Shown here: in pieces, positions 3,181 through 63,468 of the stretch | Position numbering within the stretch: the first letter of the stretch is position 1 | Layout: each line of letters starts with the position of its first letter | Assembly (NCBI RefSeq): GCF_020745735.1 | Contig: NC_083433.1 | Span: forward strand, 6,335,363 to 6,399,362 | Length of the DNA: 64,000 bases | From: Hemiscyllium ocellatum | Taxonomy: Eukaryota | Direction: 5' to 3' | Notes under the pieces: generated by a model | What the model saw: only the letters and a program-made list of their open reading frames with translations | What the model was told of the DNA's origin: nothing | Database searches by the model: none | Translations under genes and position numbers: made by a program

Positions 3181-4419
3181 GGAAGTTATAATTTCCCCTT
3201 GGAGAGAGAATCAAACTATCTGTGGAAGGGTCACAGGACCTGAAACATTAACTCTGATTTCTCTCCAAGATGCTGCTAGAACTGCTGAACTTTTCCGGCA
3301 ATTTTGTTTCTGGTTTCCAGCATCCACAGTCCTTTTGGTTTTTAATCTAACCATCTTCTTTTCAAATTCAAAGGTATAATACACCCACCAACATCCCTAT
3401 TGTTACGACTGACCAAACCTGAACCAACCTGATGTACCTACAGTATTGAAGAGCAACTTAGAGACAAGGAAATCTACAGCAATGACTCGCTCCTGGAATA
3501 TTTTGCCACCATCTAATCCACTTGCTTGGATGAATACAGTTCCCTCAACACTCAAAGACTCAGGCCATCGAGGACAAAGCAGTCAGCACTACATCCACCA
3601 CTTAACTTCATCACCAGGACAGAGAGAGACACAAGTGTACAAGCAGTTACTAAAGCGCCTTCAATTGTGCATTCATTGAACAAAATGAGAGATACATGGA
3701 AACTCCACTGACAGTTACATATTGACTTGGAACAGTGTTCCTTTTGCATCACAAGGTAAAAATCTGATACTTCCTAACAGAAGTGTGGCTGCCCTTATCC
3801 CTATCCTACCCGAGGACTGCAGTGGTTCAAGGCAGCATCTCGCCACCGTTTCACTTGCAACAAATGATGGCCCAGTCAGCAAAACCTATGTCCCATGAGC
3901 AAGGTTTAAAAAAAATCCCTTTGACCATGACACCATGGCAGCTACACCTAATGTTACTCCACCCAGTACGGGGAATCCATCCCCAGTGTCACAGCCTGAG
4001 CATCCAAGATGGAACCAGACCCTCCACTGCCTGGAAAGGAAGCCATCACCCCATCATGGTTAATAATAAGATTGCTCAAATCCCAACAAAAACACCTTGG
4101 ATGATGTGGTCATCTGTGTGAGAGAGGGGAGTGAAATAACTCCACAGAGGCTGGTATCCCAGCATCAAGTAACCTTTTCATGACACATGGAAACTCCTTG
4201 CTGTTGGTCTGGCTTCCTCAGAGCCAGCTCTCCAATCGAACAGAACCCCAGACACTCATGCAGGGCTGCCTGATTGGACTAGTTAACTGCCCCAAATCAG
4301 GGAACTCATTCTGAGGACAACCTGGCTGACCATGTTAACACTACGCTGAGCCACAGACAAGGACTGCCAAGATTATAAAGGAAGTTTGGCATCTATTGCA
4401 TGGGAAAGTAACGGTTGTT

Positions 4420-14679: not shown

Positions 14680-19646
<4,967 letters not shown>

Positions 19647-19699
19647 CTTCACTATTCCTGCTCACTGTCACCCAGACAACTCCAGACCTGAACCACCCT

Positions 19700-19930
19700 C
19701 CCTCAAGCTCTTGTATTTACCCTGCTGGGACACTCTGCACTCAACCAGAGAGAGGGAGCACCAATGATGATTGACAATCTCTGACAGCCAATCAGGAATC
19801 ACCAATGAATGTACACCCCAATGAGAGAGAGGTGTGTGTGTGTGTTATCAGAGCAGTAGATTAGAGTCAGGTCTGGATGATTATTCTGTGATTGGAACAG
19901 CAGGAGGTCACTCAGTAGTATCTCAATCAG
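19700..19930 (-). promoter_or_regulatory. Putative proximal promoter of ferritin copy 1
   Basis: TATA-like GTAAATA about 70 nt upstream of the ATG (19714-19720). TGCACTC MRE core at 19736-19742. CCAAT boxes on the plus strand at 19761, 19788 (AGCCAATCAG), 19802 and 19818. The block is conserved upstream of copies 1-6. Confidence 0.6.
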
Positions 19931-21149
19931 GTCACGGTGAGTTTGCGTCCTTTTAAAGAAATGGGTTTGGATGAGGAAAGGTTTTCAAGTTTTCTTTTAA
20001 AATAAAGTTTGTTGTGACCAACTTCAAGAGGTGCTCAATGAAGAAAGAGAGTCAGTTTCTCAGCCTGTTGTTGGAAATGGGAGAGAAAGGTGGGAGATTG
20101 GTGCTAGGACAAGGCAATTGTGACAGGAGCAGATGGGGCAGAGACTGGAAAATGTTCTCAATGACCAGAGATTTCAGAATGGGGTAGGTCACAGTCTACT
20201 GACACTGGGTAAACTGCTTAGGACTGAGATGAGGAGAAATGTCTTCACCCAGAGAGTGGGGAACCTGTGGCATTCTCTGTAACAGAAAGTGGTTGAGGCC
20301 AAATATTGAATGTTTTCAAGAAGGAGTTAGATATAGCTCTTAGGGCTAAAGTGATCAAATTTATGGGGAAGGTGTAGGAAGATGGTACTGAGTTAGATGA
20401 TCAGGCACAATCATATGGAATAGTGGAGCAGGCTGGGAGGGCTGAATGCCTCACTCCTACTCATTTTTTCTATAATTCTATGTTTCAATAACCTGGGTAG
20501 TAAGGGTCTTGTGGCACAGGGGTAGTGTCCCTCTGTCTGGGTCAGGAGGTCTAGGTACAAGAACCTATCTGTTCCAGAGGTGTCTGACAATATCTCTGGA
20601 CAGGTTCATGAGGAAATAACCAGAGCTGATGCAGGCCCAGTGGACTGAATGGCCTCCCCCTGTGCCATAACAATTCTGTGATTCTGTGGTTGATCTGCAT
20701 CTGACCAGCGATTCCCTGCCTCTGTCTCCTGACTGACCTTTCTGTGGATTGTCACCTCTCTGTGATGGAGAGCCTCGAGTGTCCCATTGAGTCTGAGAGT
20801 GATACTTCAAGAGATTTCCACCTCCTGACAGGACCACGCAGGACGGTAAGGTCAGAGAGAAGGATCTCGATAAAGTGTAGTGCAAAACAAGTCCTCAACG
20901 GCCATCCATCCAGGCAGAAGGTATTTGTCTGCTATCCACGAGGGTGGGTAAAGGCTACATCAGGAGGGAAATCCCCAGCCGACATTTCCTTGCCATTTGA
21001 GCTGGACCTACCTTCTGTAAAGGATCGTGTCTGTGCTGATGTCCAACAGCATTCCCATGCTTAACGATGCTCTGTACACAGTGTCTACCTAGAGGATTCT
21101 AACCCCCTCCCCAAACACATTGTCCACCCTGGAAAGTCAGTCAGAGGAT

Positions 21150-24613: not shown

Positions 24614-26947
<2,334 letters not shown>

Positions 26948-26989
26948 TCACTATCACCTAGACAACTCTAGAAATGAGTCTCTCCCGCA

Positions 26990-27220
26990 GCTCTTGTATT
27001 TATCCTCCTGGGACATCCTGCACTCAACCAGGGAAAGGTAGCACCAATGATGATTGACAATCCCTGACAGCCAATCAGAAATCAGCCATAAATGTACACC
27101 CCCAATGAGAGAGAGGGGGAGGGTGTGTTAACCAGAGCTGATCAGAGGTGTGGATTAGAGTCAGGTCTGGATGATTATTCTGTGATTGAAACAGCAGGAG
27201 GTCACTCAGCAGTATGTCAA
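26990..27220 (-). promoter_or_regulatory. Putative proximal promoter of ferritin copy 2
   Basis: GATAAATA TATA variant near 27000, TGCACTC at 27019-27025, CCAAT boxes, CACACCC on the minus strand near 27121-27127, and TGCTGAGTGA near 27202-27211. Confidence 0.6.
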
Positions 27221-31915: not shown

Positions 31916-34209
<2,294 letters not shown>

Positions 34210-34264
34210 CTTCACTATTCCTACTCACTATCACCTAGACAACTCTAGAAATGAGTCTCTCCCG

Positions 34265-34495
34265 CAGCTCTTGTATTTATCCTCCTGGGACATCCTGCAC
34301 TCAACCAGGGAAAGGTAGCACCAATGATGATTGACAATCCCTGACAGCCAATCAGGAATCAGCCATGAATGTACACCCCAATGAGAGAGAGGGGGAGGGT
34401 GTGTTAACCAGAGCTGATCAGAGGTGTGGATTAGTGTCAGGTCTGGATGATTATTCTGTGATTGAAAGAGCAGGAGGTCACTCTGCAGTATGTCA
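34265..34495 (-). promoter_or_regulatory. Putative proximal promoter of ferritin copy 3
   Basis: Same architecture as copy 2, with TGCACTC at 34296-34302. Confidence 0.55.
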
Positions 34496-39996: not shown

Positions 39997-42555
<2,559 letters not shown>

Positions 42556-42604
42556 CTTCACTATTCCTGCTCACTATCATCCAGACAACTCCGGACCAGA
42601 GCCT

Positions 42605-42830
42605 CTCTCCTATAAACTCTTGTATGTATCCCCCAGGGAACATCCAGGGAGAGGTAGCACCAATGATGATTGACAATTCCTGACAGCCATTCAGGAATCC
42701 CCCATGAACATAGGCTCCAATGAGAGAGAGGGGGAGGGTGTGTTAACCAGAGCTGATCAGAGGTGTAGATTAGAGTCAGGTCTGGATGATTATTCAGTGA
42801 TTGGAACAGCAGGAGGTCACTCAGCAGAAT
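42605..42830 (-). promoter_or_regulatory. Putative proximal promoter of ferritin copy 4 (altered)
   Basis: The TATA variant is changed to GATACATA, the MRE-containing segment is deleted, and the second CCAAT box is mutated to ccatt. Confidence 0.5.
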
Positions 42831-46933: not shown

Positions 46934-49803
<2,870 letters not shown>

Positions 49804-49859
49804 CTTCACTATTTCTACTCACTATCACCTAGACAGCTCTAAAACTGAGCCTTTCTCCC

Positions 49860-50090
49860 ACAAGCTCTTGAATTTATCCTCCTGGGACACCCTGCACTCA
49901 ACCAGGAGGAGATATCACCAATAATGATTGGCTGACAGGGATTGTCAATCAGTAATCACCCATGAATGTATACCCCAATGAGAGAGAGGGGGAGGGTGTG
50001 TTAGCCAGAGCTGATCAGAGGTGTAGATTAGAGTCAGGTCTGGATGATTATTCAGTGATTGGAACAGCAGGAGGTCACTCAGCAGCATCT
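49860..50090 (-). promoter_or_regulatory. Putative proximal promoter of ferritin copy 5
   Basis: GATAAAT, TGCACTC at 49893-49899, CCAAT/ATTGG motifs and CACACCC. Confidence 0.55.
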
Positions 50091-54232: not shown

Positions 54233-57172
<2,940 letters not shown>

Positions 57173-57229
57173 CTTCACTATTCCTGCTCACTATTACTCA
57201 GACAACTCAAGGAGTAAATCTCTTTCGCC

Positions 57230-57450
57230 CAAGCTCTTGCATTTATCCTCCTGGGATATCCTGCACACAACCAGGGAGGGGTATCACCAATGATGATTGA
57301 CAATCCTTGGCAGCCAATCAGGAATCACCTATGAATGTAGACCCCAAAGAGAGAGAGAGAGGAGGTGGGTGTGTTAACTGGAGCTGATCAGAGATATAGA
57401 TTAGCGTCAGGTCTAGATGATTGGAACAGCAGGAAATCACTCACCATCTC
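57230..57450 (-). promoter_or_regulatory. Putative proximal promoter of ferritin copy 6
   Basis: GATAAAT, TGCACAC at 57262-57268 (still fits TGCRCNC), AGCCAATCAG and CACACCCACC. Confidence 0.55.

Positions 57451-62668: not shown

Positions 62669-63468
<800 letters not shown>

Follow-up and report, generated by a model that had tools for sequence, protein, structure and literature searches.

Six tandem H-type ferritin genes of the epaulette shark lack a canonical iron-responsive element

A 64-kb stretch of the 3.98-Gb genome of the epaulette shark, Hemiscyllium ocellatum (C111:6335363-6399362, hereafter the window), carries on its minus strand six complete four-exon H-type ferritin genes and part of a seventh that runs past the window edge. 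A canonical iron-responsive element (IRE) is absent from all six. We consider it highly probable that they belong to an old, amplified elasmobranch lineage of H-type ferritins whose members have compact promoters of their own and an IRE-less leader of about 44 nt with no significant predicted structure, and whose output is governed by transcription and gene dosage.

IRPs bind a cap-proximal IRE and repress translation of ferritin mRNA (reviewed in PMC11719527). This IRE/IRP switch is the textbook mode of ferritin control in animals, and an intron-bearing cytosolic ferritin of a vertebrate would be expected to have the element. An amplified family without the switch, situated beside two ordinary ferritin genes that keep it, amounts to a natural experiment, showing how the storage of iron can be freed from the cell's sensing of it, probably in order to load large yolky eggs. 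Large ferritin arrays in sharks, and their expression in ovary, are already described in the ferritin passage of a preprint on the Greenland shark (10.1101/2024.09.09.611499). New here are a transcript start site read from fossil cDNAs, a genome-wide count of two ferritin IREs, a census of about half of the array and a decayed IRE in a sevengill shark.

Gene copies and coding regions

Each complete gene has four exons separated by GT-AG introns and encodes 173 residues, with a frameshift in copy 3 (Table 1). Exon borders were fixed with a processed retrocopy from elsewhere in the genome, employed as a fossil cDNA. The Pfam ferritin domain (PF00210) was matched exon by exon and the genes belong with the H-type ferritins: the 173-residue products, their residues read by eye, retain the LELY and YLDEQVK segments, and the H-type ferroxidase ligands are present. 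In human H-chain numbering we take these ligands to be E27, Y34, E61/E62, H65, E107 and Q141.

Table 1. Positions of the ferritin gene features in the window
Feature	Window positions	Strand	A of ATG	Details
Copy 1, coding region	14680-19646	-	19646	exons 19646-19545, 15941-15795, 15185-15060, 14826-14680; 173 residues, intact
Copy 1, TATA block GTAAATACAAGAG	19708-19720	-		-74 to -62 from ATG
Copy 1, inferred 44-nt leader	19647-19690	-		lone CAGTG, no IRE-type hairpin
Copy 1, CCAAT cluster	19765-19826	-		inverted and direct (ATTGG/CCAAT); -119, -146, -160, -176
Copy 2	24614-27003	-	26932	TATA 26991-27003, leader 26933-26976, coding 26932-24614; 173 residues, intact
Copy 3	31916-34280	-	34209	TATA 34268-34280; 2-nt deletion, premature stop
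Copy 4	39997-42629	-	42555	TATA variant ATACATACAAGAG 42617-42629, leader 42556-42599, coding 42555-39997; intact
Copy 5	46934-49877	-	49803	TATA 49865-49877, leader 49804-49847, coding 49803-46934; intact
Copy 6	54233-57246	-	57172	TATA 57234-57246, leader 57173-57216, coding 57172-54233; intact
Copy 7	62675-63468	-		exons 2-4 only; exon 1 and promoter past window end

The six copies are tandem duplicates of a whole unit with a period of about 7.3 kb, the repeat units being 70-98% alike when compared with one another. The IRE absence that they share is therefore one inherited state rather than six independent observations. The coding sequence of the array is under purifying selection, with dN/dS values of 0.16-0.41 both within the window and in comparisons with sevengill shark, skate and chimaera. 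The damage to copy 3 lies at the start of exon 4 (window 32034-32090, near 32060), where a TG present in copies 2 and 4 has been lost, so that CTG TGT GAC now reads CTG followed by the stop TGA. Since its aligned gene and upstream region are otherwise 97.8% identical to those of copy 2, copy 3 is probably a very young pseudogene.

The frameshift in copy 3, together with a stop in exon 1 of one array member outside the window, might suggest that the copies are silent or decaying and that the missing IRE is merely part of this decay. Two probable RNA runs from the same organism also hold little of copy 2 exon 1, with almost none of the sampled exon-1 words; the share that they do hold fits conserved exon sequence and says nothing on the leader. 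We nevertheless find decay most improbable as an explanation, given that five of the six complete copies have intact reading frames and the dN/dS values just cited, that sharks, rays and a chimaera share a conserved promoter, and that some 15 dispersed processed retrocopies, by their abundance, point to germline expression of the family. Furthermore, equivalent arrays are expressed in the ovary of another shark, according to the ferritin passage of 10.1101/2024.09.09.611499.

Long, near-perfect palindromic hairpin elements (containing gcacagcaggtcaggcagcatccaaggagcag) were seen at window 19230-19420 and 55819-55999 and at positions 3467-3594 of a further locus (L004). One of them lies inside intron 1 of copy 1, which is enlarged to 3.6 kb, and two have sub-threshold matches to plant miRNAs in Rfam. 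They are probably MITE-like repeats.

Promoter and leader

Alignment of the 5' regions of the six copies defined a block of consensus [G/A]TA[A/C]AT[A/T/G]CAAGAG ahead of every ATG, at -74 to -62 in copies 1, 4, 5 and 6 and at -71 to -59 in copies 2 and 3. The TATA-like box that the initial annotation had placed some 70 nt before the start codon of copies 1-6 is thus mapped, and its estimate of a leader of 40-45 nt holds, the position of the block and the 5' ends of retrocopies (-44 +/- 1, see below) agreeing on 44 nt. Between two and four CCAAT/ATTGG boxes precede the TATA block, at -109 to -176, copies 2-6 having equivalents of those listed for copy 1. The context of the start codon is strong, with A at -3 and G at +4. 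Promoter and leader together (-150 to -1) are 83-89% conserved and were found only in this array.

Two other features upstream of the genes deserve mention. About 45 nt before the TATA block lies an element TGTCA[A/T/C]TCATCAT (window 19780-19800, 27060-27085 and equivalent positions; also loci L032, L034, L054 and L055), which is conserved from chimaera through sharks and rays and which we take to resemble, on the opposite strand, a PBX/MEIS composite site. Further out, at -330 to -230 (window 19860-19950, with equivalents upstream of copies 2-5), is a block whose plus strand (CAGGTCACG/GTGAGT) has the look of an exon end with a splice donor after it. Its good conservation is restricted to the local subfamily, and it could represent a divergent transcript from a bidirectional promoter.

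Search for an iron-responsive element

Scanning the whole 64-kb window on both strands with Rfam cmscan returned no IRE, either at the gathering score (34 bits for IRE_I, RF00037) or at E<=10. Two positive controls came from the same genome. The first, scoring 42.6 bits with RF00037, lies at C111:6301044-6301079, 34 kb to the left of the window. It is part of the 5' UTR of gene A, a ferritin gene on the plus strand, and is located just downstream of the TATA box of that gene. The second (C53:32044491-32044527) scored 41.5 bits and belongs to an FTH1-like gene whose promoter is GC-rich. A custom motif scan of the SIREs type, which recovers both of these real IREs with 0 mismatches, gave zero sense-strand matches in the window; its only antisense matches were two with one mismatch, within the first introns of copies 2 and 3. 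The RF00037 and SIREs-type check that had been proposed at the outset therefore upholds, for the sense strand, the original suggestion that these ferritin genes are without an IRE. A pattern search of the entire genome (4 Gb) for the ferritin-type IRE core yielded two exact matches, namely gene A and the C53 gene, and one with 2 mismatches on C2.

On C2 a third IRE-like hairpin is present (G000:C2:5672816-5672850, minus strand; TCCTTCAACAGTGATTGAACAGAA), with a score of 28.3 bits that is below the cut-off. Either a decayed FTH1 retrocopy or another gene may account for it.

The leaders themselves contain no hairpin of the IRE type, in which a CAGUGN or CAGAGN hexaloop is closed by an upper stem of 5 bp and a lower stem follows below an unpaired C (or UGC/C internal loop). 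Alignment of the leaders confirmed what had been read from the letters at first, namely a lone CAGTG in copy 1 (19663-19667, minus strand) with flanks that do not pair, replaced by TAGTG in copies 2-6. The pentamer occurs 165 times in the window, for an expectation of 175 +/- 14, and is therefore uninformative by itself. Minimum-energy folds of the six leaders were no better than those of shuffled sequences (z between -1.5 and +0.7) and included no hexaloop hairpin; both real IREs of the genome, folded as a control, formed the expected hairpin.

Control by iron might instead operate by another route. The conserved leader could harbour a site at which IRPs bind in a non-canonical manner, or some other protein binds the RNA, or transcription could respond to iron or redox state. 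Over roughly its final 30 nt the leader is indeed conserved through the array, and its motif GGTGATAGTGAG recurs in the leaders of whale shark and sawfish (Pristis pectinata), so that a different control element may reside in the leader. Nevertheless, the fold results argue against a stable hairpin, the conserved block may equally be a downstream promoter element or start-codon context, and inspection by eye of the array-conserved -150 to -1 block found no MRE or ARE core. On balance, control by such a route seems improbable, and we favour leaders that are free of IRP control.

Transcript start

The dispersed intronless retrocopies mentioned above come from array-type mRNAs and hence record where such mRNAs begin. 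Two of them are bounded by target-site duplications: ATAAACA[A/G]GGGATT, found directly after the A tail, in L008 (C50:7704774-7707094) and ACAGGAGTGTC in L006 (C19:35313265-35315672). The 5' ends of both read CAG[C/T]TCTAGAG and correspond to -44 +/- 1, about 28 nt past the TATA box. The remaining retrocopies are 5'-truncated, at -35, -27, -24 and -14, and among all the retrocopies there was neither extra or foreign 5' sequence nor an IRE. Their parents are array paralogues of 176 residues with a different 3' UTR, not the 173-residue copies of the window, the leaders being of the same family. L006 and L008 occupy an identical site in a single repeat family, and their full independence might accordingly be doubted; the shared site is either an insertion hot spot or the product of one event that was later copied.

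These retrocopies also bear on the proposal that an unrecognised start site further away, or a non-coding exon upstream, supplies an IRE after all. Splice acceptors for such an exon could be provided by several AG dinucleotides of the leader (e.g. TTCTAG/AG). However, the full-length retrocopies with target-site duplications start at -44 and contain sequence upstream of the candidate acceptor, and the mRNAs from which they derive were therefore unspliced there, making an upstream exon spliced into the leader unlikely. Nor is there an obvious source for the element: none was found at E<=10 on either strand of the 64 kb or in the sampled half of the array, and the genome has only two ferritin-type IREs, the nearer of which is on the opposite strand to the window genes. 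We therefore assign very little probability to a hidden upstream IRE and retain the short leader as the one that these genes probably use.

An apparent upstream promoter at L006 and L008, comprising CCAAT and TATAAA, was considered and rejected. The target-site duplications show that both retrocopies inserted into an LTR-like repeat of high copy number, to which the apparent promoter belongs. The insertion site is just after the TATA box of this repeat (TGTAGTGATTGG...CCAATCAG...ATATAAACAGGGGATT), for which a first look gave 3,249 candidates.

The rest of the array

The array to which the window belongs contains around 60 H-type exon-2 matches, and about 33 more are found in a second array on the same contig. 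Seventeen further 10-kb blocks, representing about half of the array, contributed 20 more exon-1 starts. In every one of the 20, a TATA-type box was seen in the interval from -64 to about -80, one of these boxes being a variant, GATAAACA, that the search pattern had missed. No IRE-like motif was found in any of the 20 leaders.

At three positions in the array, C111:6441573, 6681967 and 6560262 (L039, L051 and L045), the leaders and TATA boxes are of a different sequence family (e.g. GGTATAAATACTAGGCTCATAG), so that the promoter has been replaced or has diverged within the array. The TATA box of these members is still at about -72 and an IRE is again absent.

Comparison with other ferritins and proposed control

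The two IRE-bearing ferritin genes of the same genome, gene A and the FTH1-like gene on C53, resemble the array genes in having four exons, with exon lengths of 102, 147 and 126 nt, and in their H-type ferroxidase residues. The TATA blocks are also similar, GATAAATAAGAGG in gene A compared to GATAAATACAAGAGC in the array. Gene A differs, however, in having a leader of about 135 nt, a separation of about 165 nt between TATA box and ATG, and the cap-proximal 42.6-bit IRE, whereas the array genes have the 44-nt leader and no IRE. An alignment of the promoter and leader of gene A with those of the array gave nothing credible outside the coding sequence and the TATA block.

Ferritins without an IRE are familiar from other animals, and include mammalian mitochondrial ferritin (FTMT) and FTHL17, the yolk or female-specific ferritins of snails and schistosomes, and the secreted tick FER2. 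Like the shark array, these are ferritin paralogues outside IRP control with tissue-specific expression, several of them in female reproductive tissue. The array genes differ from them in keeping their introns and ferroxidase centre, in having no presequence or signal peptide, and in being present in dozens of copies. In particular, they are not of the FTMT type, which is intronless and has a mitochondrial presequence, since they have four exons and a product without an N-terminal extension.

A closer parallel is offered by the Greenland shark, for which the ferritin passage of the preprint by Sahm et al. (2024; 10.1101/2024.09.09.611499) gives 155 FTL and 179 FTH1 copies, in three clusters that are shared with the white shark, are at least 250 My old and are expressed specifically in ovary. 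The epaulette array most likely belongs to the same family as these Greenland and white shark arrays, judging by the white-shark array-type proteins that fall in the same clade of our protein tree (see below). In that single ferritin passage (2 occurrences) of 10.1101/2024.09.09.611499, IREs, leaders and promoters go unmentioned, and in the literature that we searched we found no statement on the IREs of shark ferritin arrays.

We envisage that each gene of the array would be transcribed from its own compact promoter, consisting of a TATA box and CCAAT/NF-Y-type boxes, to give an mRNA with a leader of some 44 nt that has no significant predicted structure and no IRE. With no IRE near the cap, IRP1/2 would be without a binding target and translation would not be held back when iron is low; the mRNAs should be translated whatever the activity of the IRPs. 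Judged from the sequence, then, the array would escape IRP control, as the initial annotation supposed. Its output would be set by transcription, probably in the ovary or oocyte, and by copy number. By analogy with the Greenland shark, an ovary programme may be presumed for the epaulette shark too, and tissue-programmed expression fits both the ovary-specific Greenland shark arrays and the many germline-derived retrocopies. The array may also be independent of iron, although transcriptional control by iron would remain compatible with what we observe. The most likely role would be the supply of oocyte or maternal ferritin, made independently of cellular iron sensing. For shark annotation pipelines and studies of iron biology, the practical consequence is that ferritin protein should not be assumed to track iron through the IRPs.

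Other cartilaginous fishes and loss of the element

For comparison, six array-type loci were taken from other species: two copies from the sevengill shark Heptranchias perlo and one each from Rhincodon typus, Amblyraja radiata, Pristis pectinata and Callorhinchus milii. In all six a short leader comes after a TATA-type box, and an Rfam search at E<=10 gave no IRE. In a protein tree the window copies fall within the array lineage, a 28-row clade with 97/90 support that also includes proteins of sevengill, white, whale and zebra sharks, skate and sawfish. This clade is separate from those of gene A, of FTH1 and of the 'L-like' second array, and the chimaera protein is placed where the array clade parts from the rest.

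Traces of the element do survive. One Heptranchias leader contains TTCTTGCTTCAATAGAGTT, matching the gene A IRE TTCTTGCTTCAACAGTGTT at 17 of 19 nt, a similarity that was equalled by 0 of 2000 shuffles. It is a decayed IRE, with the loop mutated to UAGAG and the 3' stem gone. The skate leader retains ATTCTTGAGCTTCAA (12 of 2000 shuffles), and the epaulette shark leader, with TAGAGTTGTCTAG, matches the sevengill TAGAGTTGTTTAG at 12 of 13 nt (11 of 2000 shuffles). Compared directly with the IRE, the epaulette shark leader is not significantly similar, some 10% of shuffles scoring as well, and its GGAATAG and CAGTG/TAGTG may or may not be IRE remnants. The second sevengill copy was set aside as a relic: it has only a 9-mer (GTGTTTGAA) in common with the IRE, reached by 40 of 2000 shuffles, at a position inconsistent with the first relic, and the resemblance is possibly due to chance.

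Given the decayed Heptranchias element, the lineage probably descends from an IRE-bearing gene, the element having been lost by mutation and deletion rather than never having been present. The alternative is that this one sevengill copy acquired an IRE-like stretch by copying from a paralogue that bears an IRE. On the preferred reading of descent and loss, the sevengill leader would be a trace of how the switch was lost.

A more ambitious reading, possible but in our view doubtful, is that the array represents an ancient ferritin lineage of cartilaginous fishes, that this lineage lost its IRE earlier than the separation of sharks from rays, possibly even before the chimaeras branched off, that it has reached about 100 copies or more, that it would provide an IRP-independent, oocyte-directed maternal iron store, and that GGTGATAGTGAG would be a replacement control element. 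If true, this ancient lineage would be the vertebrate counterpart of invertebrate yolk ferritin.

One further peculiarity concerns the sawfish Pristis pectinata (L055, positions 1501-1560), in which the annotated product begins at an upstream in-frame ATG in the leader and consequently has a hydrophobic N-terminus (MILLELLLVIVSCSSVEKR) before MASQVRQ. This may be either an annotation artefact or a signal-peptide-like extension.
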